Origin: Thalia democratica | Lineage: Eukaryota | Length of the DNA stretch: 64,000 bases | Direction: 5' to 3' | Assembly: GCA_965202585.1 (NCBI GenBank) | Contig: OZ241832.1 | Span: 6,324,001-6,388,000, forward strand | Part shown: positions 1 to 57,840 of the stretch, piece after piece | How positions within the stretch are numbered: the stretch's first letter is position 1 | How the letters are laid out: each line of letters begins with the position of its first letter | Program-made: the position numbers and the translations under genes | The notes under the pieces: generated by a model | Database searches by the model: none | Seen by the model: the letters and a program-made list of their open reading frames with translations, nothing else | Told to the model about the DNA's origin: nothing

Positions 1-418
1 TCTTAATATAATAGATGTTTTATCTTCAATTATTAGAAAGTTATTTGCTTAAAAAGATAGTTTATAAACATAACTTAAGTTTATTTTACATAAGTAGCAA
101 TAACCTAAAAAATTATATAAAAAAGAGACTGCCTCATTATGACGCAACAATATGGTAAAACAAAATAAAAAAAAATTAAGGATTTAATGTTGAAAAATAG
201 CAGAAAAAGAAAAGTTCGTATAATTGATGCAAATGATTTTTTAAATTTCCTAACTTTAAGTGGACAAATTAAGAAGAAAATGTTTAATGTATAAGTAGCA
301 TAAATTTGAAACAAGTGGCTCATTAGTAATTTATATCTGTTATCTTTCATACAACTTGATAGTTTAATAAGTCTGTCATATGTTTTCGTTAAGTGAAAAT
401 TAAATTCAGTCATGTATT

Positions 419-470
419 AGTCATGACTTAAAAGTACTAGCACATTTTCTCGTACATCCAAGTCATAACT
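419..470. other. Imperfect inverted repeat (hairpin H1)
   Basis: AGTCATGACTT (419-429) pairs with AAGTCATAACT (460-470) at 10/11 positions, with an inner GTAC/GTAC pairing. Retained in every array unit. Confidence 0.65.
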
Positions 471-507
471 CAAAAAGGTGCCGACCAGCAGAGTAACCGG
501 GCCTAAA

Positions 508-611
508 GGACAAGAATTAAAAAAAAACAAAGGGCAGGCCGGGAGATGACAGGTGCGAAGCACCGTGTCATCGACCGGCCGTAGCCCTTTGTTTTTTTTT
601 AATTCTTGTCC
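508..611. other. 104-nt near-perfect palindrome with GCGAAGC apex (hairpin H2)
   Basis: 28-bp perfect outer stem GGACAAGAATT-A9-CAAAGGGC / GCCCTTTG-T9-AATTCTTGTCC, then GGCCGG/CCGGCC, a GA/GA internal loop, GATGACA/TGTCATC, GGTGC/GCACC and a GAA loop. Confidence 0.95.
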
Positions 612-898
612 GCTACCTAAAACTTACTTTTCAAACTCATCAATATAAAACCACTCAGTCAATAACTAAAAAACTATCAACCGATATTACCGTCAGGCCT
701 TTAATGGTCATACATCAATAAGTTAGATAACATAAGCTCAAGGTTGTTTAAAAGATAACAGATAAAGACCGTACAAATATAACGCAAAAACGTACATTTG
801 TTTGGCAGTTACGCTACTCACGGTCCATTTGACAGAAAAAGGTGGCCTTCAAGAAAAAAGGCCGCGAAGAAAAAGAGAGAAGGAAAAAGTGAAAATTT

Positions 899-921
899 TT
901 TCGCCGGCGGAGCCGGCGAAA
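899..921. other. Perfect 10-bp GC-rich hairpin with GGA triloop (H3)
   Basis: TTTCGCCGGC-GGA-GCCGGCGAAA; identical at 58127-58149. Confidence 0.9.
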
Positions 922-964
922 TGCCTTAAAAAATTATTTTAAATAATATACATCAAAAAATTCC

Positions 965-1010
965 CACCCATTTTCACATTAGGGGAATCCCCAATTTGAA
1001 AAAATGGGTG
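965..1010. other. Imperfect hairpin (H4)
   Basis: CACCCATTTT/AAAATGGGTG outer stem and GGGG-AAT-CCCC apex; largely retained in copy 2 (about 58194-58241). Confidence 0.7.
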
Positions 1011-1020
1011 ACAGGGCTTT

Positions 1021-1215
1021 GAAATTTAGTGCGCACCTTACGCGGATGCGTACTTCTTAAAAATTACCTCTACTGTAACAGGGAATGAGTAATAAAAAAT
1101 TTAGTGCGTACCTTACGCAAATGCGTACTTCTTAAAAACAACCTTTACTTGTAACAGGGAATGTATATTAAAAAAATTAGTGCGTACTTTATGCGGGTGC
1201 GTACCTTATGCGCTT
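1021..1215. repeat. About 75-76 bp tandem repeat, about 2.5 copies, carrying paired RTGCGYAC motifs
   Basis: TTAGTGCG recurs at 1026, 1101 and 1177. Six RTGCGYAC motifs occur as pairs 17 nt apart. Confidence 0.9.
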
Positions 1216-4200
1216 AATATGGTTTAGAGCCTAAATTAAATGAAATTGGTTCAGCCATCAACCTCGTTGGTCACCTATTGTTTTACATATACACAGAAAA
1301 CATTTCATAGATCTAACTGATGTACTTCTTAATGACAGAAAATGAACCAAATAAAAAGATTACTATCAAAAACAAGTTCTTTAAATGTTTACATGGACAA
1401 ATCTGTTTATATGATTGAACTGTGTTCTATGTACATTGAAACAATAGGCGCTTAACTTGCTTGTGTAAATTAACTTTACTTGGTAATCTTTTCAAAACAT
1501 TATAAACTTTATTTAATCAAAAATAAGTATGCACTTGAGATTTTGATTTAGATATTCTTGTCAAAAACTATATTTAAATTGTCACACACTGTTTATAGCT
1601 TTATTTAAATTCAATTTTAAACTGTTCCTACTACAAGATATCATACTACTGTATTTTACATAATAACTTGACTAATTAACAAACAATTATCTCTTTATCT
1701 ACTAAAACATATGCTTTTTATGCACTGTTACTAGAACTACTCACTGGTGTATTTTATTAACTTTATATTTTTACTAATAGACTTAAAATTAGACTGTCTA
1801 GTGCATTAATCATTGAATTTAGACAGCTTATTAAGTTTACATATAAACTAAAGGTGTTTACTATTTTGAATTCATCAATACATTGTTACAAACTAAAACA
1901 ATTAAACCATACTACTCTATGTGACTGATTTTCCTGTTATTCATTTCAAAATTTGTTTTAAAACTACCTGCATCATTTAAAACCTTTATGTCTGTATTAA
2001 CCTGATAAAACAAATAACTTTTATACTATTCCCAAAATTTAGTCTTAACACAAGTACTTTGAGTTTTTAACTACATTTAGTGTTGTTTCATTAGCATTAA
2101 ACCTTTTGATCTTTTAACAAATGATTTATCTTTGACACATACATAGAAAACAGTACAGCAAGTTTTTGATAAAAGCTTGTTAGTGCACTTATATGAACAA
2201 AAGAAATTGTTGATAGATAAAAGACTAGAAAGAAGTTAGTGATAGAAGAACAGAAAAATTTTAAACAAAAGTATACTTCATACACATATGCACTAACAAC
2301 CTTTAAGTTTTGCTTGCTGTGAACTGCTTTGTAAGTATATATGAATGCAAACTTAAAATTTGGAACATTTTTCCATTTTCTTTTACTAAAAAACCTATTC
2401 CTGATATGGTTTAATTGGTTTCTTTTGTAAACAATTCAATAAAACAGTTAGTTTTTGAAACTAGTAGAGAAGTACTACAATTTTGTTTTAAAATCGCTAT
2501 TGCTACTTATCTTACATGCGCATTTTAAAATGTACTTCTTATTGCAAATGATTAATCTAAAAATTTGTAAACTACATTTATACGATCTGAATTTAAATTT
2601 TATGTTGTATACTTACTTCTACACTTAGCTTAGCTTGTTGTCTATTTGGGCTTCATTCATGAATACAATACATCTTTATACAATCTTACAAAATTAAACA
2701 CAAGTGTTGCTCTTTGCTACTTTTTAATGATCTTATTCACATTTGAGTCTAATTTAAGTTAACTGTTAAGGTAGCCTATTAATTTTAGGAGAATGAAGCC
2801 CAAGTACAATGATATGTTTATGATATGTAACATTTGGTCATTATAAACCAAGGTTACCAATCTTTGAATAGAAAATGCTTGTCTGAATTATTTGTGTAAA
2901 ATTTACAAAAAAAGTGTTAACATATAAAAGCTTAACAAGTTTGAAGTTATTCAGGCCTGAGTACTCAAAGATTTACAATGCTAACAAAGGGTCTCAATTA
3001 ACAAACAAAAATTTAATGACAACAAAGGGTTTAAAGTTTACTTGTTTTTACTACTAAATACCTAACTAGTCTGATTGGTAACCCTGGCGAAAACAATTAG
3101 TTAATTCTGGAAGTATTTTATCTAATACATCAAACTAACCTCAACAACTGCTACTGTAGTAGGTACTCCCCATCCAATTGGAACCATGTTAATAATAGTG
3201 TTTTCCATTTATAAAACTTAACATGAAGAAAAAAATAACAGTTACAACTTATAAAGATACAACCTTTGAAACAAACTGAGAAGTTTTAAGATTTTGCAAA
3301 GGCTTAGAGAACTAGTTTTTTTGCTCAGCTTACTTTACAATGATGTTTCAATCTTAACTTTTGGCAAAAACTATACAGATTGCAAGAGATGCTAGTTTTT
3401 AAAGCCTCTTGGTTTCATTCTAGCATCATGTAAGTGCATTCAGACTAATTGACTTTTCTGAACATGTCATGCTAGTTTGTATTAAAGATTTTCACAAATT
3501 TTAGACTAAAGACTGTTTTTGTGACTAAGATTGTTTAATTAATATGCTTAATGAAAATAAGAATATAAAATTAAGAGCTTTGTCAAAGGTTTTGCAAAAG
3601 ATATATATAAAATAAATTATCAACAAATACTTCAAAGACTGTTGATTCTAAACTAGATCAACACACTTCTTAAACTTAATCAGTAAGTACAAAGAAATTA
3701 ATGTTTTAGAAGATAATATGAAAAATAACCATCAATTATAACATTTATATTAAACAATATTGACAGTTAATAGATGAAGTACTTTGTTTAGTGTACTCAA
3801 ACTGCACAATGAAAGAAAGAAAGAAAAATTAAGTCCAGAGCCTAGAGCTCCTTCTTCTACAACTACTTTTATCAAATGAGTTTGCCCAGGCAAAAATTTT
3901 TTCTACAAAATGCTATCTTGTTGTGATGTCACATTAAAATGTAAGATTTTCCAGAATTCTTAAAAAACTACAAATCGAAACACTATCTGAGCATAGCAGA
4001 GCGATTTTTGACATTTTCGAACACAAAGTATTATTTATTTGACGTAGTGCTAAACATTACTTTATTTTTTCACTTGTAAAAGCTAAAACTACTTGTTTAA
4101 ATTGTTTAAACCTTATTTTAATTTGACGGTTCTTTTATTTATTCTTTTTATAGTTTTTTTTTTTCTTAAGTTTTAGTTTTTTTACTGTAAGAGTGATGCT

Positions 4201-6684
4201 TGGTTAAACATATTATTTAAAATTAAGGTTAAAAAAATCATTATGATCATATAAACTACAATCGACAACATTTAAATAGTATATAAAACAAGTATTTAAC
4301 TCTAAATTACACAAAACTGCTTTTAATTTATTTTAAAATTGTTTTTCACTTAATAGTTTGTTCAAGATGAATTATGTGTATTTTAGAAACCTTTATACAT
4401 CAGTTTATAGCACTACATATAAAGCTTTGTAAACTCATTTTAGTTAAATTTTAGTTTAAAAAGTTTTGCCATGTTTGCCAAAAACTACAGAGTTTTCGTA
4501 GTCATTGATAAAACAACTTGTTCAACTTTAAATTTGAAGCAAATAGATAAAAAACCATATTGTGCATAGTGATTGAAAGCTTAACAAAGACACTGTAATA
4601 ATAACATTTATGAATGACTGAAAAAAACTTTGCTTGTATTGATTATAGCAAAAAAATCCATATGTCACATCAAGAAAAAAAAACAGTTTAATAATCTATG
4701 ATTCCCACTCACAAAATTGTTAGCATGTTCACTGTTTTGAACCTTACATGTTAAATAAAAGTTGATCATGCCATTTCAATGCTTAATGTTTTTTTTTACT
4801 ATGAAGCATAAAGAAATCCTTACTTAAACAATACCTTCATTGTATTAAGATCTTTTAATTATTTTCAAATAAATAAGCAATAGGTAAGATGTCAAGTGTA
4901 TTCACTGACTTGATTTCTTTTTTGTCTTAAGTACTAATTTATTACACTAGCATTAAATGTAATACTGCTTTTTATTAATTTACTTAATAAATAATGACAC
5001 ATAAATCATTGATAAGTTCCTGAAACTAATGATCTCTGTTAAACTGTTAAACTAATGATCTCAACATACAACTTTGTTTTTTTTACAGTATAGTCTTAAG
5101 TTAAAAATATATTGTTACAATGAAAATATGATCAACTGTTGTTATAATTGAACAATGAGTTTCAAGCAGCTTTAAGCCACAAGGAAGATGGTAGCAAAAC
5201 TGATCAGTTTAAATTATCCTCAAGTAAGTTGAATGTATTTAACTAAAAGATTAATGTTTACTAAACAAGTATTTTCAATAGACTGCTGTAAAATTCTCAT
5301 GTAGCTAGAATAAGTTAATATTTAAAACTTTTATTTTTTTGGAAAGTTTTAATTGTGTTCTTTTTTATAACTTCCAACAATAGACTAAAGTAGTAGTTGA
5401 AAAATTTGCAAAATTTAATTTTTCAAATGTTTTTATATCAAATAATTTGTTCTAAAACAGGTGTACAGTCTTGCAGATTTAACAAGCAAAAGAAAAACTA
5501 AACTTACCAAACCAAGCTATGAAAAAGAACAGCTGATCAACATCATTTAGTTTCAATGAAAACCTTATCCCAAAATAACCTTTGCAATGGTTAGTTTCAA
5601 GTATAAACCTAATAAGTTTGAAAGCTCTAAACAAAAAAGATTTAATAAAAATTTATTCCAATGTCTTAATAGTATAACTTGAAAGTTTACTTTAAAGTTA
5701 TTTCACAGAACATTACATTAACTTAAAACTACTTAAAGTTCCTTTGAAAATGTCTGTATCTCACAAACTAGTAAATGTAAATTTTTTAAATAATTTTGAT
5801 TTGGTGTAAAACACATCACTGCAAAGAAAATTTTAATTTTAGACAGTACTCTTAGAAATTTTTTTAATTCAAATAAGTTTAAACTTTATACAAAGGTTAT
5901 ATTAGTTTCTATAAAATTTAGTATACAACTATAACCTAATCTAGTTCAACAAAAAAAAATTGCCTCAATTTTTTCTATATTTGTTGGTTATATTTAAAGT
6001 TAATTGAGTTTAGATAGTGAAACTGATTCTTTTACAAAATAACAGCTTTAAATAAACTTTTTCAAAACTAGACTAGTTTTGTGATTTATGTTAGATTTTT
6101 TTGCTAGTTCCTAAATGCATTTAACTATTTAATATTTTGTCTGTTAATTTACATTGCATTAGACTTGGTTTTTATGCAAACCTCTTTTGCACAGTATTCA
6201 AGAAACTAAACTCAGATTTAGACTAGCTTGTAACATACATGATTTCTACAACTATGAAATGATCAAAAGAAAAATAAATACGTTGTAAGTATATTCAAAT
6301 AGGTATTTTGTACAATATCAAATGTTTAATAAAAATAAATTATAATTTGTCTTAAGTAGTGTGGGTAATTTCTGTTGTTTGTACTATATATTAAAAAACA
6401 TTTCAATCCTACTTTTAGATGCTACTCTTGTAGAAAATAAAAGTCTGGCCATCTGATAAAAATATGTGCTAAAAAATATTTACAATCAAAACACAACAAC
6501 ATTTTCTGAAAGAATTCTGCAATTATTCTAAAGTTAGTTTTTGAAATACACACTTAAAGATTGTTGTTTAAAGTAAATACAAAAATACTTACTACTTTAG
6601 GAGCTTTTATAACTTCATATGTATTTTTCTTAACTTTCTTATAAATAAAAACAAAATAAAAGTCTTAATCTAGCAAATTTTCAG

Positions 6685-6877
6685 GCAACACAAATCAAGT
6701 GTGAAAGTGAATTTGAGTGGGCATGGGGAAATGCAGTCCAAGATGTTCTGTGAACGACCATGCACTTGATTGCAGTGATGGAGTAGTGACCTACGTATCA
6801 ATTCGAAAGACCAAAGCCATCTTGGAAGATTGGAAGTTGAACTGAAGGACAAATTATTAAATGATCAACTCAATAAA
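6685..6877 (+). other. Candidate terminal exon (unknown product)
   Basis: TTTTCAG acceptor, locally higher GC, 22 codons (ATQIKCESEFEWAWGNAVQDVL) to TGA at 6751-6753, AATAAA at 6872. The 100 nt comparable with copy 2 (63901-64000) are identical. Confidence 0.3.
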
Positions 6878-8821: not shown

Positions 8822-9379
8822 TATGTATTATATTTAGTCAGGGCTTAACTAGTGTATTTGGAAGTGGTATTCATTGTTGATCATTTAACTTTATGTTAAT
8901 CGAGATTTTCTCACACAACTTATTAATCAATGCTTTGCTCTGATTAACTTTCGTTTATGTTTTTATTAAGTTTACTCCAAGATAGCTTTATTCAATATAT
9001 TAGTTCAAAGTTCTAACTTTTTCAAATTGCAAATTTATTTTAATTAAAAACTACTTCAATAATGTTTAATGCGTCAGTGAAAAGTATAAGAATAATACAA
9101 GGTTCACATATACTCATTTTCATAAACTCCCCCTCGGCAACAAGTTTAAAAATGTTAGCTCTTTTACTAGTTATTTACTTTTTTAATATTCATCCAATCA
9201 CCATTTAGTGTTGCCTGATGATTAAAATAAACCAAGAGGGTTATAAAATCTGTTTCAGGAAACTCTGAAAAAGCTAGCGAGCTCAACGAACATTTTCATA
9301 TATAAACTTTATTGTCTTAATTAACTAAACTTTGTTTTCTCTTTAACATTTAAATCTACAGAAAGTGCTACCATAGACA

Positions 9380-9600
9380 AGGACATACTTTTGCCAAATT
9401 TAAATTTTAACGCGATTTTCTAAATAGCGTTAAGGATTTAAATATGCAAAATTATAATGTAATCATTGATATCAAAATCAATTTAGCAATATATCATTCG
9501 TTGAAAATCTTCAAGCTATAATATTTAACTAAAGTTTCTATGAATTTAATTGAGCGATGTTTTCCAACGATTGCTTATTTTAACAAATTTCACAGTTCAT
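9380..9600 (+). pseudogene. Highly degenerate BTB-end/BACK-start relic upstream of Kelch gene 1
   Basis: Translates with stops as ...INLAIYHSLKIFKL*YLTKVSMNLIERCFPTIA..., matching KNCLVTHCSSNIFKLSNSSKNSMNLIERCFPMAS of the downstream paralog. Confidence 0.65.
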
Positions 9601-9956
9601 AGTTGTAATTTTTCCGAACCCAGAGACAGTTTTTTTATTAAGAATTTTGCTAAACAACCAAGGTGTTCATTGCATTATAAAATATGTTTATTTGTAAGCT
9701 TTATTAAACATATTTTTGTCATCTGCCGCTAGGCAAAAGTCAAAAAATAATTGCTCCGTTATCAGACATAGCCTTTTTTAGAGAAAACTACTTATTTAAT
9801 TTCCTCTTTGCTAGACAGTTATCCTGATAACAAAAACTGACGCAAAAGGGTCGTTGCCTGATAAAGCTAGAGAAATTTTTATAAGTTTGTATGTCTAGAT
9901 AACATAATACTGTATTTTGAAATGTTTACATTTTAATCTTTACAGGAAACTTCAAT

Positions 9957-11352
9957 ATGGACGAGAACGAACTTGTGATGTCAATGAAACTGAACAAGAT
10001 TTTACTTAACGAAATTGAAGATAATAAAATAAACAAAACTATGATGTCCAAAACCGATGTAAAAAATTGTTTAGTAGCATATTCCTCTTCTACTATTTTC
10101 AAGCTGTTAAATTCATCTAAAGCTTCCATGAGCCTTATAAAACGCTGTTTCCAATGATTAGTGATTCAGACAATTTTTTGGAGTTAGATTTTATCTCTAT
10201 TACAATTATACTTTCACGCAGTGCTTTAAACATTGATTCAGAACTGCAAGTATTTAATGCACTTCATAGCTGGATATGTCATGACATAACTGAACGTAGG
10301 AAGTATGCGAAACAACTTTTATCTAAGGTTCGGCTTCCGCTTCTGTCTATTCCTGCATTAAAGCAAATTTTAGACAGAGTATCATCAAATTATTATGAAT
10401 GTAGTAACTTAATCGAAGCTGTATTAAACAGAAAAAAGCTGTTAAACTCAAACATATGTAATATCACAAGCAGGTACTTCAACCAAACTAATTTTAACAT
10501 ATTACTGTGTGGGGGCAAAAATGTTAACCTAAATAAAGTTTCTAATGATGTTAAGTTATTTAATGCAAACAACTTTAGGGAGGTCAATTATTTGCCACAC
10601 ATGAAAGAAGCCAGATGCAATTTCGGAGCAGTTTGTATAAAAAGTGAAATTTATGTGTTCGGTGGCATTGATTCTTCTTTAGAACCAAAAATGTCAGTTG
10701 AAAAATACTCAACTGTTACCAATACTTGGGAACAAATAGTTAACATGGTAGATGATCGCATCTTGTTTTCTGCTTGTTCTTTTATGGATAATGTTTATAT
10801 CCTTGGCGGCCGTATAAATAGTGCTATAGGAATCCACGAAACAGCAACTTGTTTTCAGTTTAATGTAACTAGTCTGAAATGGAAAGACGTATTAAGAATA
10901 AACAACGCAAGAATATTTTCAGCTTCTCGTTATTTAAAGAAAGAATAGTTGTATCTGGTGGAAGGTATAGTGATGATAGTTTAAACACTGTTGAAGCTTA
11001 TGACCCTGTTGGAGATACTTGGAAAAACATGCCAAATATGATTAATGAAAGAGATGGTCACAAATCAGTTGCAGTAAAAAACAAATTGTTTGTAATTGGC
11101 GGATCTTTTACAAACAATTGTGAAGTTTTTGATTCAACCATTAATAGGTTTACTCTATTAAAACAGCCTACATTAGATTCTGGGTTTAACTTATATGACC
11201 CTTCTGGAGTGATTACAATTGGCAGTAAGATTTTTGTTTTTCAGATTAACAGTGATGTCAAAACCTACGATATTATTAACAATGAATGGTCAAAAAAAAA
11301 ATTTGAATCAACAGAAAGTATAGAATTTTTTTCTTTGGTGAAATGTTTCTGA
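9957..11352 (+). pseudogene. Kelch-like protein (BACK + about 6 Kelch blades), paralog 1, two frameshifts
   Basis: ORFs 9957-10157, 10154-10948 and 10879-11352 join into one protein. BACK motifs (NFLELDF, ELQVFNA..W, LLSKVRLPLLS) and Kelch GG motifs (IYVFGG, VYILGG, IVVSGG, LFVIGG) are present. Frameshifts at about 10150 (T3 vs T4 in paralog 3) and about 10930. Confidence 0.85.
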
Positions 11353-12269
11353 AACCTTAAAGAGAACTTTTTAAAAAAACTCAGTAAAAAAAAAACCGAG
11401 TACAGTTTTTTCAATCATTGATTTAATTTTGTTGATATCTACTGTTTAAACGTACTGTAGATACTGGGTAGAATTAAAAAAAAAACAAGAAACTAATAAC
11501 GTTATTTTGAAATCTTTCAAGATTTAAACTTAAATAATGTTTAAGTTATGCGAAATTTTTAGTATTTTTAAACAAATCTTCCTTAAATATTTTCTTATAC
11601 AAACATTTTCTTATTTAGATAATTTATTAAATTTTAAGGTGCACTATATTAAACGATTTTTATAAAAACATAACAATTTATTCTCTACTTCAAATACGTT
11701 TTTTAAACGTAAATAATTAATTTGTTTTAGATTTTTTAGACCAACTAAATTTTTTACAGTCAACGATTTATAAACTTTATTGGTTTTTACTAGTCATACT
11801 AGAAAAAATTTTGAAAAACACGATAAAAATACTTTTAAAAAATACTTAGCTCTAGTATTAACCTTTAACTGTAATAAGTATGTTGAATATTTATACCGAC
11901 ACTAAGGTTTAGCTTAAATTTACAGATTATATCAAGACATATCAATAAACTAATAACCAAAGTAAAAAATCTTTATTGAACTGTTAGTGAACTAATAACA
12001 TTAATATATACTTTTAAAAAATGCAGTTTTCATCTATAAACAAGACCAGCTGCAGTCATTAAAATTTATGCAAATTCGTATGCAACAAAATCGAATGATA
12101 ATGACAAGTATATATTTTTTTTGATTTTTTTTCTAAACTTACAAACACTTAAAACTAAACACATCCATCGTTTCTGGGCAGAAAATTTGACCAAGCATAA
12201 CACCAAAAATAACGGTGTATCAGGAAATAATCTGACAAACGAGTTTTCAGTAGCATACTCAAACTAGTA

Positions 12270-13080
12270 TTAAGAAAATCGATATAAAAATTTGTTTAGT
12301 AACACATTTAATCATCAAATATTTTCAATCTATCAAACTCATCAAAGTTTCCATTTGAGCGCTGTTTTCCTTTGGCTTCTGATTCTGAAAGTTTTTTAGA
12401 GTTAGACTTTAACTCTGTTAGAAGAACACTTATAAGCAATGAATTAAACGTTGATACAGAGCTGCAAGTATTTAATGCAGCAGATAGCTGGTTGTGTCAT
12501 GCCTTAACTGAACGTAGAAAATACGCAAAAACTCTTTTGTCTAAAGTTCGACTTCACCTTCTGTCAGTTCCTGCATTAGAACAAGTTTTTGAAAGAGTGT
12601 CATCAAAATATCATGAATGTGCTTACGTTATTAAAGCAGTTTTAGACAATAAGCAACAACTAAACTCAATCAGTTGCCATATTACAATTAGGTACTGCAA
12701 CCAAAGTAATTTTAACATATTAGTTTGTGGAGGAGCAATTTATTGCCTAGATAAAGTTTTTAATGATGTTAAGTTTTTTAGTGCAAACAATTTTAGTGAA
12801 TTCAGTAATTTGCCAAAAATGAGAGAATGTCGAAAATCTTTTGGAGCAGTTTATATTAAAGGTGAAGTTTATGTGTTTGGTGGCGATGATGGTAAACAAG
12901 TTGAAAAGTATTCCCATTTAACCAACACTTGGGAACATGTATCTGACATGATAGATGATCGTATGTTTTTTTCTGCTTGTTCTTTTGTGGATAGTGTATA
13001 TATTATGAGCGGTCTTATGGGTGAGGCTACAGGAGGGAACGATATAGCAACTTGTTTTGAGTTAAATACAAAAAGTCTTA
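12270..13080 (+). pseudogene. Kelch-like paralog 2, degenerate N-terminus and truncated after about the third blade
   Basis: ORF 12372-13178 starts at TTG; it is homologous to paralog 1 up to ...CFELNTKSL (13080) and then runs into unrelated sequence. Upstream codons are frameshifted. Confidence 0.85.
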
Positions 13081-13839
13081 TTTTTATGGTTTATAAACTT
13101 ATAGATTTTATAGTCATTTTAAACCTTAAAAATGTTAAAAAATCTCAAAAGATTAACGCAAAACGAAGCAAAAGATGAAAAAAGTTGCTTGGAAGAGCCA
13201 AGTAGAAAGACAACAAGACTCGAACATATCACACAAAATATATTCAAGTCGCTAACAAATCCTGTCAACCAAAACAGTCCTGAATTTGTTATGTTGAACA
13301 AGAAAGCAACTTTTGAAAAGCTGAACGGCAAAGTGTTTGATAAAGTTAAAGACTTCGAGAAGCAAGGTTTTCCATTTTTATGTTTAAACATACTTTATCT
13401 AAAATATTGTAAATTATAGAGTAATTTTGATCTAGTTGAAAATTTAATATAATTTTTCAAATTTAATAATTTTTTACAGCAGTTAATTGAATATAACAAG
13501 TAACTGTTTTTGTTAGTTAAAAGCGACTTCAATAAAGTTTAATGGGTTAGTGAAAAATATAAGATTAATTCTGGGTTTTAACTCATTTTCATAAATGCTC
13601 CCTCGGCAACAAGTTCAAAAATAATAGCTCTTTTACTAGTTATATACATTATTAATTTTCGTTTATCTACCAGTTAGTGTTGCCTAACATTATCTTAATC
13701 TAAAGGGTGATATCGTCTATTTTACAACACTCTGAAAAAGCTCGTGAGCTTAATAAACGTTTTTATATTTAAAAAAATATGCTTAACTTTCATTTTCTTA
13801 TTTAAAGTATAAATTCTACAGAAAACCCTATTATTGACA

Positions 13840-14060
13840 AAAGCATACTTTTGCCAAATGTAACTTTTAATGCTATTTTCTAAACGATGTTAAGAATTTA
13901 AATATGCAAAATTTCAAATAATTAAAAAAATAGTTAAAATTAGAAATAAAAAACAGTTTAGCAACATAATATTCGTCGAAAATTTTAAAGATATTAATTA
14001 TGGCTAAAGTTTCTATGAACTTAATTGAGAGATGTTTGCAAACGATTACTTATACTAACA
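13840..14060 (+). pseudogene. Second copy of the degenerate BACK-start relic
   Basis: Paralogous to 9380-9600 (CATACTTTTGCCAAAT..., AAAGTTTCTATGAACTTAATTGAGAGATGTTT). Confidence 0.55.
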
Positions 14061-14440
14061 AATGGTACAGTTCATGATTGTAACTTTTTAAAACCCAGAA
14101 ACACTTTTATATTTATTTAGAACGTTGTTAAATAAAAAATTAAGATGTTCATTGCACTATAAAAAGTATTATACTAAACAAATGTTACGAAACAAGTTTC
14201 ATTTATCTCTCGCTAGGCAAAATTCAATAAATAATCACCCGTTTTATCAGATATAGCTCTTTTGATGTAAAACTTAATAGAAAACAAATCACAGGCAAGT
14301 TGGTTGCCCTAATTGTAAAAATCGAGGAAAAGTAGACATTGTTTAACAAGGCTAGAAACCTTGATATAATTTTATATAGTTTGAATAGTAAAGTATTATA
14401 TTTAGTATAAGTAATTGTTATTTTTACAGAAAAGTCAACT

Positions 14441-15253
14441 ATGGACGAGGTCGAGCTTGTGATGTCAATGAAACTTAACAAAATTTTACTTAACGAAGTT
14501 GAAGATAATGAAATAAACGAAGTTATGATGTCCAAAACTGATATAAAAAATTGTTTAGTAACACATTGCTCATCAAATATTTTCAAGCTTTCGAATTCAT
14601 CTAAAAATTCTATGAACCTTATTGAGCGCTGTTTTCCAATGGCTTCTGATTCTGATAACTTTCTAGAGTTAGACTTTAACTCTGTTAAAAGAACACTTTT
14701 AAGCAATGAATTAAACGTTGATACAGAGCTGCAAGTATTTAATGCAGCAGATAGCTGGTTGTGTCATGCCTTAACTGAACGTAGAAAATACGCAAAAACT
14801 CTTTTGTCTAAAGTTCGACTTTCCCTTCTGTCAGTTCCTGCCTTAAAACAAGTTTTTGAAAGAGTATCATCAAAATATCATGAATGTGCTTACGTTATTA
14901 AAGCAGTTTTAGACAATAAACAACAACTAAACTCAATCAGTTGCAATATTACAATTAGGTACTGCAACCAAAGTAATTTTAACATATTAGTTTGTGGAGG
15001 AGCAAATTATTGCCTAGATAAAGTTTTAAATGATGTTAAGTTTTTTAGTGCAAACAATTTTAGTGAATTCAGTAATTTGCCACAAATGAGAGAATGTCGA
15101 AAATCTTTTTGAGCAGTTTATATTAAAGGTGAAGTGTATGTGTTTGGTGGCGATGATGGTAAACAAGTTGAAAAGTATTCCAATTTAACCAACACTTGGG
15201 AACATGTATCTGACATGATAGATGATCGTATGTTTTTTTATGTTTGTTGTTTT
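14441..15253 (+). pseudogene. Kelch-like paralog 3, nonsense mutation and 3' truncation
   Basis: ORF 14441-15112 ends at TGA where paralog 2 has GGA (KSF-G-AVYIKG). Homology continues to about 15253 and then breaks. Confidence 0.88.
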
Positions 15254-15405
15254 CCTGCATTAAAACAAATTTTTAATGGTGACATTATTGAAGCTGTTCA
15301 ACAAACAACAGCTAAACTCAACTACTTGCGATATCACAACCAGGTACTGCAACCAAAGTAATTTCAACATATTAGCTTGTAGAGGTGAAAACTGTTACCT
15401 AGAGA
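15254..15405 (+). pseudogene. Fragment of a fourth Kelch-like paralog (BACK end/linker)
   Basis: PALKQIF..., then after a frameshift QQLNSTTCDITTRYCNQSNFNILACRGENCYLEK, matching the BACK-Kelch linker. Confidence 0.75.
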
Positions 15406-16929
15406 AACATCGGAGTCTTACAAAGCACTGAACAAGCTCGAATAAGGACAAACTATATTGAAAATGCCGTGTATTTCCAAACTGTTCAACAGGAGTCACC
15501 ACACCTGACACCCAAAAGTTACATGAGCTGCCTTATTTGACGCAAAAACGTTACGAGCAACAAGTGCCGGCATACTCCAATCATAAACTCCAATCAAAAC
15601 CCGTATTTACAACCGAATGACTACGACTCTGTTTGTGATGAGCAACCACCAAACTGTATTTACGAAGAATGTGACTGATTTGTTATAGAAACTTCTTAAA
15701 TAAAGCTGTTGAAAATTTTTTGTTGAATGTTTTAAGCGTTGTTGTCAGATTTTAACCAGAATAAAGCCAAATGTATTTAAAACACGTTTCTATTTTTTGT
15801 AATCTAGCAACTTTACTTAAAACTACTTGTTATTAACTGATGTTTTGATCAAATTGCTGTATATGGTTTGTAGCACAGTTGTCAGGCTGGATTTTTTTAC
15901 AGATGATGGAAAACTTTAAGTTTTTGAATTTAAACTTTTACTAGTGATGCTAATACTATCAATAAAATTATCAGCGTTTTAATTATTACGTCACTATACA
16001 TAAAACTTTATTGCTTTCACAATTTTGTAGAGTAAAAGTGGACTGAACAGAAAAACTTTGATTTTTGTATTTATTTAAAAAATTGCATAAAAAATGGGTT
16101 AATTTTACATTTAGAATGATAAATCAAAATAACTGTTTTATAAGCACTGAAGTTAAAGTTTCGAGCAAGTTTTAAAAAACTAGTATATAATCGAAAATTT
16201 AGATAAAAAGTTAGATAAAAAGTCGAAACAAATACAAAGCATTGTAAAAATATGTCAAGTATATGCGACATGAACTGTAATCAAAAACTAATAGTAATAC
16301 TACATGTGTTTGAAAGATGTGAAAAAGTGACAGTTTACATAAATTCAACAGTTGAACTAAATTTTAAAGTTACTCAGCTGATGCAAGTAATTTAATTCAG
16401 CTTTGAAACAAAAACAAAGTAAAATCTAAGGGCTAGAAAAATCTTTAAATGGTATGTTTGAACTTGCTTTAAACAAGAAACTAATTCTAAGTGTTTTTAA
16501 TATCACAAAGTAAAGGTTTACAGTATTTTAGACATGGAATTTGAACAGGCGACGATACAGCGAACAACCAAGATTAATTCAAGGAAACATAGAACAACAA
16601 CGTCACACTGAATTAGTTCCGTATAATTGTTGAACTTGATTTAGAGCATGATAGCCGGATTATTTACTACAAATATGTATAACTTGTAGTCAATATCCAG
16701 CAAATAATACTAAAAACCACGGTACAAAAATACGAAACTTTTTTTGAAAATTTCTTCCAGGTTTTTTAAGAACTTTTGCTCTTTTTTAGTACAAAATAAA
16801 ATTAAAGCTGAAAATTTGTTTTAATTAGTAAACAACGTACTATTACGAAAATTTAAATATATTTTTTGAATGATATATAATTTTTTTCTATATAAATCGT
16901 ATTTAATAGAATTTTCAATACTTAACATA

Positions 16930-21919: not shown

Positions 21920-22715
21920 GGCCTAGAAGTGTACCTTACTTAAAGTGCGTACTTTACAGTTACATAGATAAATAAAAATGTCTTCATTATATTTAAATAT
22001 AAAGACGCCAAACAAGCACAACAATTAGAATTTTTTTATTAATAAACTTTTAAATATAAAACAACCAATTCATCATCAAAAATAAAAACTAAGAATACTA
22101 ATACAAACCGTGAAACTAGACTGAAAACTCTCAAAGCTTTATACAATGCTGGAAGTGTACTCGAACTGTAATGTAAAAGTTTAATAAAAAATAATTAAAA
22201 TATTAAGAAATAAGGTTGAAAACAGTTATACAAACCAGCGCAACAATGATAAAATGCTAAAAGCTGATTGTAGCTTGAAAATTATTTTTTTTTTGAAAAT
22301 ACTAAGAAAATCTACACACATTAAAGTTTTTATTTAAGAAATACTTTATATTCAAACTGAAGCAGTCTCAAAAAAAAAATAAACAAAGTTTATGTAGAAA
22401 AACAAAAAGATTGAAAAGTGAACTTGAGAATCAATTGATCAATTTGATAGCTAAACTAAACTTTTGATCGTACTGAAATACATAAAGCCCAGAGACGTAC
22501 CTTACTTTAAATGCGTAACTTACATTTTTAGATACCCTAACATTTTTACACAGATAATTAAAATGTCTTTATTATTTTAAAATATAAAAGTTCCAAACAA
22601 GCACGAAACTTATATCTTGTTTTTAAAAATTAAAAAAAGTTAATTAAACAAGTCGCTCATTGAAATCATACAAAACTGAGAAGACTTATACGAATCGTGA
22701 AACTAGAATGAACTT
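21920..22715. repeat. Diverged tandem duplication, period about 586 bp
   Basis: AGATAA.TAAAATGTCTT, CCAAACAAGCAC and CGTGAAACTAGA.TGAA blocks each occur twice (about 21965-22130 and 22551-22712). Confidence 0.7.
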
Positions 22716-23164
22716 TAAACAATTATTGTTTGAGACATAAGGTGTAAAGGTTCATAAAAACAAGCACAACAACGTGATAGTAAATAGCAAAACACTAATG
22801 ACTTACTGTAGATCGAAGATTAGTATATTTTGAAAATATCAAGAGAATATTGTCTTTTGAATCTTTTATTGGTGAGAAACAAAATACTAAGAGCTTAGCA
22901 GTAAGAAATGCTATGAAGAGTAGAACACTTATTGTGGAAATACTAAGTGTTGTTTGTAAATTTCTTTTAGGTTTTAAAAAACACGTTTTTTGGTCCATTT
23001 TTAGTTGGTCATTTAATTTAAGTAAAATAATTGTCTTTAATGGCATAACAACATTGTAAAGATACTGTAAAGGTACTCCTAGTGTGTTATAAAATGAAAT
23101 TATATATTGGTGATACAAAAAAATTCTTTATTTTACATAAAATAAAAAATAATGTTTTTATTAA

Positions 23165-23216
23165 CTTTGTTCTGGGTTTTTCCAGGGTTCTAGGTTCCAA
23201 AAAGTGGACAACATCG
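23165..23216. mobile_element. Very degenerate MITE right end
   Basis: TTTTTCCAGGGTTCTAGGTTCCAAAAAGTGGACAAC resembles the end at about 8790-8821. Confidence 0.3.
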
Positions 23217-24438
23217 CTCTTTATAGGGGCAACAATCAATTATAAAAGTGAGGAATCGAAAAAGTAAATGTGTAATCAACAGTAAGGATTGTTTTGTTTC
23301 TTGTGCCAAGTGGACATTTAAAAAGTTAGTTTGTGAAACCTCGGAACTAAGAGCTTAATCTTAATAGAATCGAAGCTATTTATAATACTTAAACTAATCA
23401 AAGTATATAAGAATCATCCCTATTTGATTTAATATCGAAAAAGCGAGTTTAATCTGGAATATTTAAACTGGATTTATTGAATTAGTTAAGAAAGTAGTTT
23501 GACTGAAAGGGTCATGACTTTGAATGAATAAAGTATACGAAGCATTAAGTTTATTTATGACTAACAAAAAACAAACATACAACAAAATAATGTAGTATCC
23601 CGACATGAAATGTGACATGTTTAATTCAGAACTAACCTGAGAGTACTAAGAGCCAAGTAAGTTAGAAACAAGTTTAAATATATCAAATATAAAAGAACAT
23701 TAGTCATTACTTTCCACATAAAATATCACTAAGAAATTGTTAAACAAAATATGTTTGTTTAAAGACTCAATATTTAAGAAAGGACCCACTGATTGTATAT
23801 ACTAAATACTATTAACGTAGCTATAGAAATCGTAAACATAAACTGTATTTGTTTAACAATAGTAAATATTATAAAGAAATAAACGGTTTAGCTAACAAAT
23901 TAAAAACAAATACATAAAAATAAAAAAAATTGTATATGACTAAATCCTGAAATATTTATTAGTACTACGTTACGGTTCATAGTTAGTATGTAAAGTAACT
24001 TTGATTAACTTAAATTTATAAAAAATATTAGATATTTTTATCAAAACAAGAAAAATACCTAAAATAGAAAACTAAATGGAATTAACTAACTGCTGGACAT
24101 AGCAATCGTAAAAAATTTAAAAATCATATATGTGCTGAAAAAAAACAACTACTTTGTTTGAATTTAATATGTAAAGTTGCAACTTTAGAGAACATCTGTT
24201 AACCTATTATGACTTAACAGTTTAGCCAAGATGTAGTCTGTTTATTAGTTTACTAAATAAGTTTTTATATACTTTGCATATTAAACTATAAGGTTCTGTC
24301 TAGATTAACTATATTCTTTATGAAAATACGCAGTAACAAGTAGTACATACACACATATAATTAAGCTGTTACAAAAAAAAAATTATATAGAAAGTGTTGT
24401 GTATACGTTTACCATTGCTATTTAAGCATTTCTAACTA

Positions 24439-24986
24439 CTTGCAAAAGATAGTTTATAAATATAACTTGCATGTATTTTACATAAATAGCAAAAACCTAA
24501 CTAATTATTATAAAAAATAGACTACCTTATTATGACGCAACAATATGGTAAAAAAATAATAATAAAATTTAAGGATTTAATGTGGAAAAATAGCAGAAAA
24601 GAATAATTCGTATAATTGATGCAAATGATCTTTTAAATTCCCTAACTTTATGTGGACAAATTAAGAAGAAAACGTTTAATGTAGAAGTAGCATAAATTTG
24701 AAACAAGTGGCTCATGAGTAATTTATATCTGTTATCTTTCACACAACTTGATAGTTTAATAAGTCTGTAATATGTTTTCGTTAAGTGAAAATTAAATTCA
24801 GTCATGTACTAGTCATGACTTAAAAGTACTAGCACATTAACTCGTACATCCAAGTCATAACTCAAAAAGGTGCCGACCAGCAGAGTAACCGGGCCTAAAG
24901 GACAAGAATTAAAAAAAAACTAAGGGCAGGCCGGGGAGATGACAGGTGCGGAGCACCGTGTCATCGACCGGCCGTAGCCCTTTGTT
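24439..24986. repeat. Third, truncated copy of the repeat head (A'), leading into the array
   Basis: Homologous to about 48-593. It lacks the internal duplication of the array unit in its 5' part, but is identical to the array unit from about 24812. Confidence 0.9.
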
Positions 24987-39900: not shown

Positions 39901-40675
39901 GGTCGGAGAGCAAGTGTAATCTTGAAACTAACTGTATTGTAAAATTAAGCAAGTATTTTTACCAATAGGATGCAGCTTAATTTTAAGGCTTTTACCTACT
40001 TTAAACGGGTTGTGTGAACGGACTAATACTTTACAAAGAAGAATATACACAAAGATTGATCAACGGAATTTCGGAAGTGTGAAGTACAAGAAGTTATTTA
40101 CTTAAAAAGATAGTTTATAAATATAACTTGCATGTATTTTACATAAGTAGCACAAACCTAAGAAATTATTTAAAAAAAGAGACTACCTCATTATGACGCA
40201 ACAATATGGTAAAGAAAAAAAAAATAAATTTAAGGATTTAATGTGGAAAAATAGCAGAAAAAGAAAAGTTCGTATAATTGATGCAAATGATTTTTTGAAT
40301 TCCCTGCCTTTAAGTGGACAAATTAAGAACAAATTGTTTTATGTATGAATAATGAAATTAAAAACAAGTCGCTCTTGTACGATTAATGCAAATGATTTAT
40401 AAATTTACCTAATTAAGACGTAAATATTTTGCAGAAGTATTTAAAACAAATGGCTCATGAGTAATTTTAATCTTTCATACAACTTAATAGTTAATAAAAT
40501 TCTGTTATATGTTCTAGTTAAGTGAAATTTATATTCAGTCATGACTTAAAAGTACTAGCACATTAACTCGTACATCCAAGTCATAACTCAAAAAGGTGCC
40601 GACCAGCAGAGTAACCGGGCCTAAAGGACAAGAATTAAAAAAAAACTAAGGGCAGGCCGGGGAGATGACAGGTGC
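24987..40675. repeat. 925-bp tandem array, part 1 (16 full units plus one cut by the gap; 18 hairpin copies counting A')
   Basis: CTCGTACATC recurs at 24841, 25766, 26691, 27616 and 28541. GGTGC at 24945 vs 40671 is 17x925+1. One extra A at about 37441. Confidence 0.99.
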
Positions 40676-40875
40676 NNNNNNNNNNNNNNNNNNNNNNNNN
40701 NNNNNNNNNNNNNNNNNNNNNNNNNNNNNNNNNNNNNNNNNNNNNNNNNNNNNNNNNNNNNNNNNNNNNNNNNNNNNNNNNNNNNNNNNNNNNNNNNNNN
40801 NNNNNNNNNNNNNNNNNNNNNNNNNNNNNNNNNNNNNNNNNNNNNNNNNNNNNNNNNNNNNNNNNNNNNNNNNNN
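40676..40875. other. Assembly gap (200 N)
   Basis: Run of exactly 200 N, a fixed-size scaffolding gap, so the true distance is unknown. Confidence 0.99.
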
Positions 40876-41539
40876 AAATGGGACATAGGATATCAATAAT
40901 GCCATTATTTTATACTTTCAAAAGATATTATGAAATTGATGGTGAAGAGCAAAAAAATATATTAGTCGTCTTAAAGGTAGTTTTTAAGCTTTTACTAAAT
41001 TTTATGGGAAATTTTAAGAAGTTTAGGGACTATAAGCTGTAAAAGGAGGGCTACAAGGCCACAATTTTAACTTCACACTTATTTTTCTAAAGTTTAATTT
41101 GATGAGCAAATAGTAGGTCTTAGGCGTATTTGGGGAAATTTTGATATTCTATAAATTTTATCGAAAGTTTTCAGAATATTTGGTTGCTATAATAAGTGAA
41201 TGGGGGCCACAAGCCATAAAATGAAAAATACACAAGAAAAGATAATGAGGAAAAATAAAAAGGTGTTTTTAAAGGTAGTTCTTTGAGAAAACTTGTTAGA
41301 GTGAATTGTAGATCTTCTAATTACTTTTCTAGTTATTCTTTGTAAAATCTAAAAACGTGTTTCATAAAAATAAACTTAACTATAATATGAAATATATCAA
41401 TCAATTAAATAATAAAGTACATTAAATATTGAAAAATTTCTTACTAGAATACTTCAATTCTTATTTAGTATAAAAAATAATCAGCGTTTTACATAGTGTT
41501 TTTGATAATTATTTTTGTAACTTTCACATGACTAATTAT
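40876..41539. other. Non-array AT-rich segment between the gap and the second array
   Basis: No match to the 925-bp unit; joins mid-unit at TAAGAAATTATTT (41540). Confidence 0.8.
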
Positions 41540-44500
41540 TAAGAAATTATTTAAAAAAAGAGACTACCTCATTATGACGCAACAATATGGTAAAGAAAAA
41601 AAAAATAAATTTAAGGATTTAATGTGGAAAAATAGCAGAAAAAGAAAAGTTCGTATAATTGATGCAAATGATTTTTGAATTCCCTGCCTTTAAGTGGACA
41701 AATTAAGAACAAATTGTTTTATGTATGAATAATGAAATTAAAAACAAGTCGCTCTTGTACGATTAATGCAAATGATTTATAAATTTACCTAATTAAGACG
41801 TAAATATTTTGCAGAAGTATTTAAAACAAATGGCTCATGAGTAATTTTAATCTTTCATACAACTTAATAGTTAATAAAATTCTGTTATATGTTCTAGTTA
41901 AGTGAAATTTATATTCAGTCATGACTTAAAAGTACTAGCACATTAACTCGTACATCCAAGTCATAACTCAAAAAGGTGCCGACCAGCAGAGTAACCGGGC
42001 CTAAAGGACAAGAATTAAAAAAAAAACTAAGGGCAGGCCGGGGAGATGACAGGTGCGGAGCACCGTGTCATCGACCGGCCGTAGCCCTTTGTTACAATAA
42101 GTTCACTTTGTGCATGTTTATTGTAATGTATAATGAATGTTAGCACAACTGTGTTTGTATAGCTCATTAGTAAGAACAATCTATTCAACAAATTAGTTAG
42201 TACTTTAGGTCGGAGAGCAAGTGTAATCTTGAAACTAACTGTATTGTAAAATTAAGCAAGTATTTTTACCAATAGGATGCAGCTTAATTTTAAGGCTTTT
42301 ACCTACTTTAAACGGGTTGTGTGAACGGACTAATACTTTACAAAGAAGAATATACACAAAGATTGATCAACGGAATTTCGGAAGTGTGAAGTACAAGAAG
42401 TTATTTACTTAAAAAGATAGTTTATAAATATAACTTGCATGTATTTTACATAAGTAGCACAAACCTAAGAAATTATTTAAAAAAAGAGACTACCTCATTA
42501 TGACGCAACAATATGGTAAAGAAAAAAAAAATAAATTTAAGGATTTAATGTGGAAAAATAGCAGAAAAAGAAAAGTTCGTATAATTGATGCAAATGATTT
42601 TTTGAATTCCCTGCCTTTAAGTGGACAAATTAAGAACAAATTGTTTTATGTATGAATAATGAAATTAAAAACAAGTCGCTCTTGTACGATTAATGCAAAT
42701 GATTTATAAATTTACCTAATTAAGACGTAAATATTTTGCAGAAGTATTTAAAACAAATGGCTCATGAGTAATTTTAATCTTTCATACAACTTAATAGTTA
42801 ATAAAATTCTGTTATATGTTCTAGTTAAGTGAAATTTATATTCAGTCATGACTTAAAAGTACTAGCACATTAACTCGTACATCCAAGTCATAACTCAAAA
42901 AGGTGCCGACCAGCAGAGTAACCGGGCCTAAAGGACAAGAATTAAAAAAAAACTAAGGGCAGGCCGGGGAGATGACAGGTGCGGAGCACCGTGTCATCGA
43001 CCGGCCGTAGCCCTTTGTTACAATAAGTTCACTTTGTGCATGTTTATTGTAATGTATAATGAATGTTAGCACAACTGTGTTTGTATAGCTCATTAGTAAG
43101 AACAATCTATTCAACAAATTAGTTAGTACTTAGGTCGGAGAGCAAGTGTAATCTTGAAACTAACTGTATTGTAAAATTAAGCAAGTATTTTTACCAATAG
43201 GATGCAGCTTAATTTTAAGGCTTTTACCTACTTTAAACGGGTTGTGTGAACGGACTAATACTTTACAAAGAAGAATATACACAAAGATTGATCAACGGAA
43301 TTTCGGAAGTGTGAAGTACAAGAAGTTATTTACTTAAAAAGATAGTTTATAAATATAACTTGCATGTATTTTACATAAGTAGCACAAACCTAAGAAATTA
43401 TTTAAAAAAAGAGACTACCTCATTATGACGCAACAATATGGTAAAGAAAAAAAAAATAAATTTAAGGATTTAATGTGGAAAAATAGCAGAAAAAGAAAAG
43501 TTCGTATAATTGATGCAAATGATTTTTTGAATTCCCTGCCTTTAAGTGGACAAATTAAGAACAAATTGTTTTTATGTATGAATAATGAAATTAAAAACAA
43601 GTCGCTCTTGTACGATTAATGCAAATGATTTATAAATTTACCTAATTAAGACGTAAATATTTTGCAGAAGTATTTAAAACAAATGGCTCATGAGTAATTT
43701 TAATCTTTCATACAACTTAATAGTTAATAAAATTCTGTTATATGTTCTAGTTAAGTGAAATTTATATTCAGTCATGACTTAAAAGTACTAGCACATTAAC
43801 TCGTACATCCAAGTCATAACTCAAAAAGGTGCCGACCAGCAGAGTAACCGGGCCTAAAGGACAAGAATTAAAAAAAAACTAAGGGCAGGCCGGGGAGATG
43901 ACAGGTGCGGAGCACCGTGTCATCGACCGGCCGTAGCCCTTTGTTACAATAAGTTCACTTTGTGCATGTTTATTGTAATGTATAATGAATGTTAGCACAA
44001 CTGTGTTTGTATAGCTCATTAGTAAGAACAATCTATTCAACAAATTAGTTAGTACTTAGGTCGGAGAGCAAGTGTAATCTTGAAACTAACTGTATTGTAA
44101 AATTAAGCAAGTATTTTTACCAATAGGATGCAGCTTAATTTTAAGGCTTTTACCTACTTTAAACGGGTTGTGTGAACGGACTAATACTTTACAAAAGAAG
44201 AATATACACAAAGATTGATCAACGGAATTTCGGAAGTGTGAAGTACAAGAAGTTATTTACTTAAAAAGATAGTTTATAAATATAACTTGCATGTATTTTA
44301 CATAAGTAGCACAAACCTAAGAAATTATTTAAAAAAAGAGACTACCTCATTATGACGCAACAATATGGTAAAGAAAAAAAAAATAAATTTAAGGATTTAA
44401 TGTGGAAAAATAGCAGAAAAAGAAAAGTTCGTATAATTGATGCAAATGATTTTTTGAATTCCCTGCCTTTAAGTGGACAAATTAAGAACAAATTGTTTTA

Positions 44501-57822: not shown

Positions 57823-57840
57823 TTTTTTTAATTCTTGTCC
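57736..57840. other. Complete palindrome H2 in copy 2 (GCGGAGC apex)
   Basis: The only array-type copy that keeps the T9-AATTCTTGTCC right arm. Confidence 0.95.

Follow-up and report, generated by a model that had tools for sequence, protein, structure and literature searches.

Genomic context of the palindrome

The window (the whole stretch of 64,000 nucleotides that we analyzed) is AT-rich, with 24-32% GC in 2-kb windows, and it contains just six open reading frames (ORFs) of at least 120 amino acids. Four of the six are fragments of BTB-BACK-Kelch proteins and belong to three tandem paralogs (9034-15407) with 75-94% mutual identity. The Kelch frames are broken into pieces (for example, 10154-10948 overlaps 10879-11352, which is in a different frame), and the paralogs are either pseudogenes or bear assembly indels. 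Relatives of these proteins turned up solely in marine metagenome assemblies (Tara and ENA), typically at 65% identity, although one 170-aa fragment was 96% identical. On this basis, we take the source to be a planktonic marine eukaryote, probably an animal. The closest relatives are intronless ORFs of 370-460 amino acids on those Tara and ENA contigs.

The two ends of the window are paralogous, and we will refer to them as locus A (left) and locus B (right). The substitution divergence between A and B is 5.4% in 1301-6764. A satellite-like tandem array separates the two segments. The features that matter here are:

38-6764, plus strand: locus A arm of the segmental duplication, with its partner at 57201-64000
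508-611: palindrome copy 1 (locus A), 104 nt, imperfect, with its apex at 552-564 and the variable loop base at 558
612-748, minus strand only: adjacent hairpin of 137 nt, with a paralog at 57841-57976
899-921, plus strand: second hairpin with a perfect 10-bp stem, TTTCGCCGGC-GGA-GCCGGCGAAA, with a paralog at 58127-58149
24444-57840, plus strand: tandem array of ~35 units, with a period of 925 bp and 98-100% identity between units
40626-40675, plus strand: array palindrome that is interrupted at the apex, stopping at ...GGTGC before a gap of 200 N (40676-40875)
57736-57840: palindrome copy 2 (locus B), 105 nt, with a GGA loop, a T.T mismatch, and a GGA/GA internal loop

The DNA around copy 1 has little sign of coding. 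To its right (612-6764) there are no ORFs of at least 70 amino acids, and to its left, a 102-aa ORF (105-413, minus strand) has no known relatives and was rated as spurious. Via this 102-aa ORF, we reached three metagenome contigs of locus A (L003, L004, and L005), which provide additional haplotypes. L003 is 98.3% identical to positions 1-628 of the window, and L005 is a Tara scaffold. Another ORF, which spans the palindrome (417-563, minus strand), had no match in ENA assemblies when used as the query. Upstream of copy 1, L003 and L005 carry a degenerate repeat copy of ~430 nt (X0) that lacks the palindrome, and further upstream they are 86% identical to positions 22214-24768 of the window. 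It follows that both loci are parts of one large segmental duplication, spaced ~57 kb apart.

Database searches identified no known element. No Rfam family matched the window at the gathering score, and nothing credible was found for 1-1400 at E ≤ 5; the best weak match was to MIR7996, which scored 18.5 bits where the cut-off is 119 (E = 2.2). A scan of the window for tRNAs found none. Patterns for the apex and its flanks were absent from IMG/VR, JGI metagenomes, and GTDB genomes, which is a weak negative given that these collections are poor in eukaryotic DNA. Strings taken from the apex, from the arm, from the second hairpin, and from a putative leader had no matches in the literature. Across the ~30 kb of unique sequence in the window and 22 kb from related contigs (L001-L005), there was neither another copy of the palindrome nor a solo arm.

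Anatomy and folding strength of the palindrome

A preliminary description of this DNA had reported a 104-nt palindrome at 508-611, and we confirmed its arms, its GC-rich inner stem, and a fold beyond chance. The outer arms of copy 1 (508-535 and 584-611) are AT-rich, 28 nt each, and 100% complementary. Within them, a bulged A (536) faces GTA (581-583). The inner stem is GC-rich: GGCCGG pairs with CCGGCC, and a 2x2 internal loop of GA/GA follows (543-544 and 573-574), as the preliminary description had noted for copy 1. Between this loop and the apex, GATGACA pairs with TGTCATC, with one bulged G (565). The apex itself is GGTGC-GAA-GCACC (552-564). Position 529 is A in copy 1 and pairs with T590.

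Folded as DNA, copy 1 has an energy of -48.5 kcal/mol on the plus strand (z = -14.5) and -48.0 kcal/mol on the minus strand (z = -14.6). Folded as RNA, the corresponding values are -76.3 and -73.4 kcal/mol, with z around -16 (-16.1 for -76.3). None of 200 shuffles folded as well. Copy 2 (57736-57840) also folds much more strongly than expected by chance. Among 4,852 windows of 140 nt (positions 1-24400, both strands), copy 1 gave the lowest-energy hairpin, at -81 kcal/mol, as compared to a mean of -18 and a standard deviation of 6.3. Overall, this is a real and strong 104-nt palindrome in non-coding DNA, far beyond a chance fold.

On both strands, every one of the palindrome's 46 pairs is Watson-Crick, without a single G.U. 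The pairing stops sharply at the ends of the palindrome: the flanks are unpaired, and the left flank (X, 38-507) and the right flank (612 onward) have no mutual complementarity.

An adjacent hairpin that looks like RNA

The palindrome directly abuts another hairpin (612-748), with no spacer. This hairpin folds on one strand only. On the minus strand, 612-748 and its paralog have RNA minimum free energies of -42.9 and -41.0 kcal/mol (z = -5.8 and -5.4), while on the plus strand, the values are just -13.0 and -18 kcal/mol (z = -0.6 and -0.85). The hairpin contains 14 G.U pairs and no A.C pairs. Its A and B paralogs differ by 14 substitutions, yet the pairing is kept: in the consensus fold, there are nine one-sided changes that keep the pair, one double change, and no broken pairs. 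For 612-1015 on the minus strand, where the structure was predicted from paralog A alone, 10 of the 14 pairs that were hit by a substitution are preserved, as compared to ~24% in control regions. As an aside, 612-748 diverges faster than the background (10.3% vs. 5.4%), almost only by A<->G changes that keep the pair.

These patterns suggest that 612-748 is a hairpin at the RNA level, and perhaps a precursor of small RNAs, which would imply transcription of the minus strand. Given this neighbor, transcription through the palindrome is likely as well. Nevertheless, the palindrome and 612-748 evolve under different rules, because they have zero and 14 G.U pairs, respectively, and because of the pair-keeping changes in 612-748. 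The juxtaposition provides an internal control: the asymmetry in G.U pairs separates a DNA-type hairpin from an RNA-type hairpin right beside it.

Might the palindrome be part of the same RNA? It would then be one module of a minus-strand non-coding transcript, along with hairpins at 748->612 and 826->768, and would act as a precursor of small RNAs (processed by Dicer or Drosha) or as a structural domain. We give this a real but minor chance of being right. The strand bias and the preserved pairing of the neighbor fit with it, and so do the lack of a spacer and the conserved pairing within the palindrome. On the other hand, the palindrome lacks the G.U pairs of its neighbor; its loop on the minus strand would be UUC or UCC, which would make the GNA cap irrelevant; and its arms contain A9/U9 runs, and on its 5' side Microprocessor would find no single-stranded flank. 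Also, Rfam has no match at the gathering score, and the best weak match has an E value of at least 1. We rejected the narrower idea that the palindrome belongs to a described family of pre-miRNAs or hpRNAs, as there is no match to Rfam at the gathering score and there are no G.U pairs among the 46.

Differences between haplotypes

The metagenome contigs, copy 2, and the array provide four haplotypes of the palindrome, in two lineages, with a GAA loop at locus A and a GGA loop at locus B and in the array:

Window copy 1: CAAAGGG around position 529; internal-loop G run GGGAG; apex loop GAA
L003: CTAAGGG around position 529; internal-loop G run GGGAG; apex loop GAA
L005: CTAAGGG around position 529; internal-loop G run GGGGAG; apex loop GAA
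Copy 2 and array: CTAAGGG around position 529; internal-loop G run GGGGAG; apex loop GGA

Three mutational events account for these differences: A<->G at the center of the loop (558), an indel of one G in the internal loop, and T->A at 529. The GA/GA internal loop is thus polymorphic, with GGA/GA in L005, copy 2, and the array. The change at 529 is derived in copy 1 of the window, as L003, L005, copy 2 at locus B, and all of the array units have T. It converts a T.T mismatch (with T590) into an A-T pair and so perfects the arm, an outcome that just 2 of the 312 possible substitutions would have.

All three events lie at unpaired sites, which comprise ~15 of 105 nt, and none are at the ~90 paired nucleotides. 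The probability of this placement by chance is (15/105)^2 or ~0.02 for the two substitutions, or ~0.003 if the indel is included; this estimate, like all of our statistics, is post hoc and draws effectively on two lineages and four haplotypes. There are no differences between A and B at the ~90 paired positions, and only 0.8% of background windows of 90 nt are free of differences, but the duplicated segment has a dozen other stretches of 80-109 nt without a difference. Considered over its full length, the palindrome, with two substitutions and one indel in 104 nt, shows no unusual conservation and ranks at the 15th percentile of background windows. By the same measure, the percentile is the 6th for 420-611 and the 3rd to 4th for 749-1050.

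The preliminary description had emphasized that the triloop is kept across diverged copies. This was overstated, since the array represents one truncated lineage and there is one apex change in two lineages. When we tabulated the loop variants across the window, L003, and L005, as that description had suggested, we did find GNA in all four haplotypes, but this rests on one transition. A random substitution in the triloop would spare G-N-A with a 1 in 3 chance. Because the retention of GNA reflects a single A<->G transition between two lineages, with that 1-in-3 chance, it carries no statistical weight. A single base difference of this kind does not show that the tip is under selection.

The array and its junction within the right arm

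Copy 2 belongs to the final array unit, which continues directly into the paralogous sequence downstream, and it is the sole full-length palindrome in the array. The other 34 array palindromes (truncated copies from 24900-24986 through 56811-56897) keep 87 of the 105 nt and are missing the final 18 nt of the right arm. Of these, 32 are identical and two have one additional A. Judging from this near-identity, the 34 copies are one lineage, nearly identical by descent. The right arm breaks off after GCCCTTTGTT: the copies end with ...GTAGCCCTTTGTT, and ACAATAAG... follows. At the junction of the 925-bp unit, ...CCCTTTGTT is joined to ACAATAAG..., at a point within the right arm where its T9 run begins. 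Every truncated palindrome is followed by a linker of 303 nt, which has no homologues within the window or in the related contigs and loci. The truncated palindrome folds via its inner 69 nt only, with a DNA energy of -25.1 kcal/mol (z = -6.7). The only rearrangement junction of the region thus sits within an arm of the palindrome, as a single junction event. The palindrome marks the breakpoint of the array, and it may have caused the array to form.

The array is also informative about assembly. One array palindrome stops right after GGTGC, where the gap of 200 N begins, and the metagenome contig L004 terminates at the apex as well (...GGTGCGA). This contig end and this gap, both at the apex, show that the inverted repeat defeats assemblers. 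The 665 bp after the gap (40876-41540) are unrelated to the rest of the window, and the array then resumes in the middle of a unit (unit position 372). The gap and the 665-bp stretch are probably a scaffold join or a mis-assembly at the inverted repeat.

Within the array, we also noticed that the first unit (24444-24986) is 93% identical to the locus A copy, as compared to 88% for the other units, and that inner units contain an insertion of ~85 nt that partly repeats a segment with ATGCAAAT.

Two kinds of element that were suggested by the array unit were rejected. A Helitron terminates on its 3' side in CTRR, with a 16-20-nt hairpin ~10 nt ahead of it; the 5' end is TC, and tandem copies are joined as CTRR followed by TC. 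Here, the hairpin is 104 nt and the junction joins CCCTTTGTT to ACAATAAG, which is the wrong junction for the end of a Helitron or for a rolling-circle array. The second was a spliced-leader or snRNA-type gene: the unit has the octamer ATGCAAAT, a possible AG/GT at 478-480, and the T run of the right arm, but there is no match to an Sm site.

GCGNAGC at two apexes

As the preliminary description had stated, the loop is GC-GAA-GC in copy 1 and GC-GGA-GC in copy 2 and in the array. Throughout the 64 kb, every GCGNAGC sits at the apex of either the palindrome or the second hairpin: GCGAAGC is at 555-561, and GCGGAGC is at 57784-57790, in all array units, at 907-913, and at 58135-58141. With the repeats collapsed, there are four occurrences versus 3.25 expected, so the motif is not over-represented. 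The GCGGAGC at the apex of the second hairpin is on the same strand as the palindrome's motif and lies within a conserved region (749-1050, 2.3% divergence). The unique part of the window has two GC-rich triloop hairpins with a perfect stem of at least 5 bp, namely the palindrome apex and 899-921, and both are G-R-A on the plus strand. A post hoc estimate of the chance of this is ~1/8 x 1/16. The shared position and strand of the caps are suggestive, and they hint that the cap is no accident.

The apex has exactly the GCGAAGC and GCGGAGC heptamers of the d(GCGNAGC) mini-hairpins (Hirao and co-workers; reviewed in PMC13037366), including the motif's C-G closing pair and the G and A at loop positions 1 and 3. 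The known mini-hairpins have a sheared G.A pair and are extraordinarily resistant to heat and nucleases; the apex belongs to the motif by its sequence. The promoter hairpins of phage N4 have stems of 5-7 bp and 3-nt loops of GGA or GAA (PMC13037366). The apex of the palindrome, GGTGC-GAA/GGA-GCACC, matches the geometry of the N4 vRNAP promoter hairpins, with a 5-bp stem and a 3-nt loop. The preliminary description had cited both N4 promoters and the origin of phage G4. This was right for N4, whose promoters do include GCGGAGC and GAA loops, but the motif at the G4 origin is GCGAAAGC, not GCGAAGC (PMC13037366). The context of the N4 promoters is absent as well: here the cap tops a 46-pair palindrome in ORF-poor eukaryotic DNA, without a phage, a single-stranded DNA replicon, or a vRNAP. 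The palindrome region had no blastn matches among 50,697 phage records, and there are no replication or phage-type genes near the palindrome.

A comparison of DNA and RNA folding energies, which had been proposed as a check, turned out to be uninformative. In the nearest-neighbor DNA model, the energy of the apex is -3.5 kcal/mol for GAA, GGA, TTC, and TCC alike. Because the model cannot tell GAA or GGA from TTC or TCC, DNA versus RNA folding energies cannot decide between the two kinds of hairpin.

Proposed explanation: a hairpin-forming DNA quasipalindrome

Our best explanation, which we hold tentatively, is that the locus contains a quasipalindrome whose hairpins influence how it mutates and rearranges, and that the data can be explained without a dedicated cellular function for the palindrome or for its GNA tip. 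The palindrome would be older than the duplication that gave rise to loci A and B. Whenever the DNA became single-stranded in vivo, for instance at a stalled fork or on the template of the lagging strand, a hairpin of ~46 pairs could snap together on either strand. The hairpin would nucleate at the GC-rich center, and on the plus strand, the GC-GNA-GC cap might speed nucleation. Mutations would survive at unpaired positions only, and template switching within a strand could correct mismatches by copying the other arm; the T->A change at 529 could be an example of such templated correction. The palindrome would also be a site for breaks or template switches, and one such event may have put foreign DNA inside the right arm. 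The junction in the right arm would then have been amplified to form the 925-bp array. Assemblers would tend to break at the apex of such a structure.

A substitution that makes imperfect arms complementary is the signature of template switching at quasipalindromes (PMC7202029, PMC7954356). The derived change at 529, which completes the arms, fits this definition, as one event. Unlike the published hotspots, this event was read from natural haplotypes instead of from a mutation assay, and selection for pairing predicts the same pattern. The array also resembles the satellite DNAs that have dyads and form non-B-form DNA at centromeres (PMC5889037), as each 925-bp unit likewise holds a dyad, of ~69 nt and with a DNA energy of -25 kcal/mol. 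However, the published dyads are under 10 bp, whereas this dyad is a truncated by-product of the junction, and nothing indicates a centromeric location. The locus cleanly illustrates, in natural sequence, a long quasipalindrome with a substitution that perfects an arm, an exact breakpoint of a satellite array, and assembly breaks at the apex.

We favor a DNA-type palindrome over an evolved RNA hairpin because of the absence of G.U among the 46 pairs, the T->A change at 529, the breakpoint within the arm, the contig end and gap at the apex, and the second GCGGAGC on the plus strand.

Another possible origin, which would be compatible with a quasipalindrome that shapes its own mutation, is that a small palindromic MITE or foldback transposon inserted before the duplication of A and B. 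MADE1, for instance, is an 80-bp palindromic MITE that is the source of the miR-548 hairpins. The palindrome shares with MADE1-type MITEs a near-perfect inverted symmetry over ~100 nt, long terminal inverted repeats (here, 28 bp and perfect), and the ability to fold as either DNA or RNA. Its boundaries are sharp, and it is absent from X0, the degenerate repeat copy upstream in L003 and L005. Also, each flank has the 6-nt sequence CCTAAA (502-507 and 617-622), although the right one is offset by 4 nt (GCTA). But there is no clean target-site duplication that abuts the palindrome: the adjoining bases are AAA on the left and GCT on the right, as ...CCTAAA precedes GGAC at the left end and GCTACCTAAA... 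follows GTCC at the right end, so that the flanks are not identical next to the ends. Unlike for MADE1-type MITEs, neither an abutting target-site duplication nor dispersed copies were found in the window or in L001-L005, and within that sequence neither copies nor solo arms lie outside the two paralogous loci. The lack of matches in IMG/VR, JGI metagenomes, and GTDB points the same way, weakly, as those collections are poor in eukaryotic DNA. We consider an origin as a MITE to be unlikely.

The preliminary description suggested that the structure may be selected as single-stranded DNA or as a cruciform, instead of as RNA. Part of this stands: other evidence favors a strand-symmetric, DNA-type palindrome. 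The argument from GNA retention fails, and selection as single-stranded or cruciform DNA is not demonstrated. In this proposal, the GC-GNA-GC cap would be functional, perhaps as a signal for priming, initiation, or protein binding on the plus strand. Both heptamers are textbook mini-hairpins with N4-like stems and loops, the two GC-rich triloop hairpins agree in strand and in G-R-A, the stem is Watson-Crick on both strands, and if the minus strand is transcribed, then the plus strand would be the one that is displaced. In the model, extrusion of a cruciform would cost +46 kcal/mol for copy 1 and +57 kcal/mol for copy 2, and a GC-rich, bulged center is unfavorable for extrusion. The 34 amplified copies lack part of an arm, so the full structure is not required for amplification or retention. 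And as discussed above, the retention of GNA amounts to one transition, and the setting is ORF-poor eukaryotic DNA with Kelch genes, without similarity to phages or a replication gene nearby. A young palindrome, or templated correction, would account for the DNA-type evidence equally well. We view a selected single-strand signal as quite improbable. The second GCGGAGC hairpin on the same strand is not something that a purely passive palindrome predicts.

A stronger version of this idea, which strikes us as very unlikely, is that a eukaryotic nuclear locus uses two unrelated plus-strand hairpins with GC-GNA-GC caps, ~350 nt apart, as single-strand signals; these could fold on the strand that is displaced by minus-strand transcription (an R-loop), or they could be the initiation site that drove amplification of the array. 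If the cap truly is selected, this would be a rare cellular, and eukaryotic, use of the mini-hairpin motif, which to our knowledge has so far been documented in single-strand origins and promoters of phages and plasmids.

We considered and rejected several other identities. The palindrome has the shape of an intrinsic terminator on both strands (the inner GC stem and then TTTGTTTTTTTTT), but it lies in a eukaryotic and ORF-free context. A terminal hairpin or concatemer junction of the poxvirus type would have inverted flanks, which are not seen here, and the ORF density is very low; the likeness (104 nt, AT-rich, with Kelch genes and tandem repeats) is superficial. The CCTAAA flanks might suggest a telomerase template, but they are single hexamers only.

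Other hairpins in the window

Several other hairpins are present. Within locus A, a nested hairpin at 965-1010 (CACCCATTTT...AAAATGGGTG) is conserved in the paralog. Its center is a perfect palindrome, GGGGAATCCCC (982-992), which reads like a dimer site of the kappaB type. Nearby, 1022-1204 and 58253-58438 each contain 2.4 copies of a tandem repeat of 75-76 nt, and each copy of the repeat has a mini-hairpin, GCGTA-CCT-TACGC, followed by GCGGATGCGTAC. Far from the palindrome, 16596-16745 forms a long hairpin on the minus strand, with an RNA energy of -43.5 kcal/mol (z = -5.5), as compared to -24.4 kcal/mol (z = -1.7) on the plus strand; its sequence is unrelated to that of 612-748.
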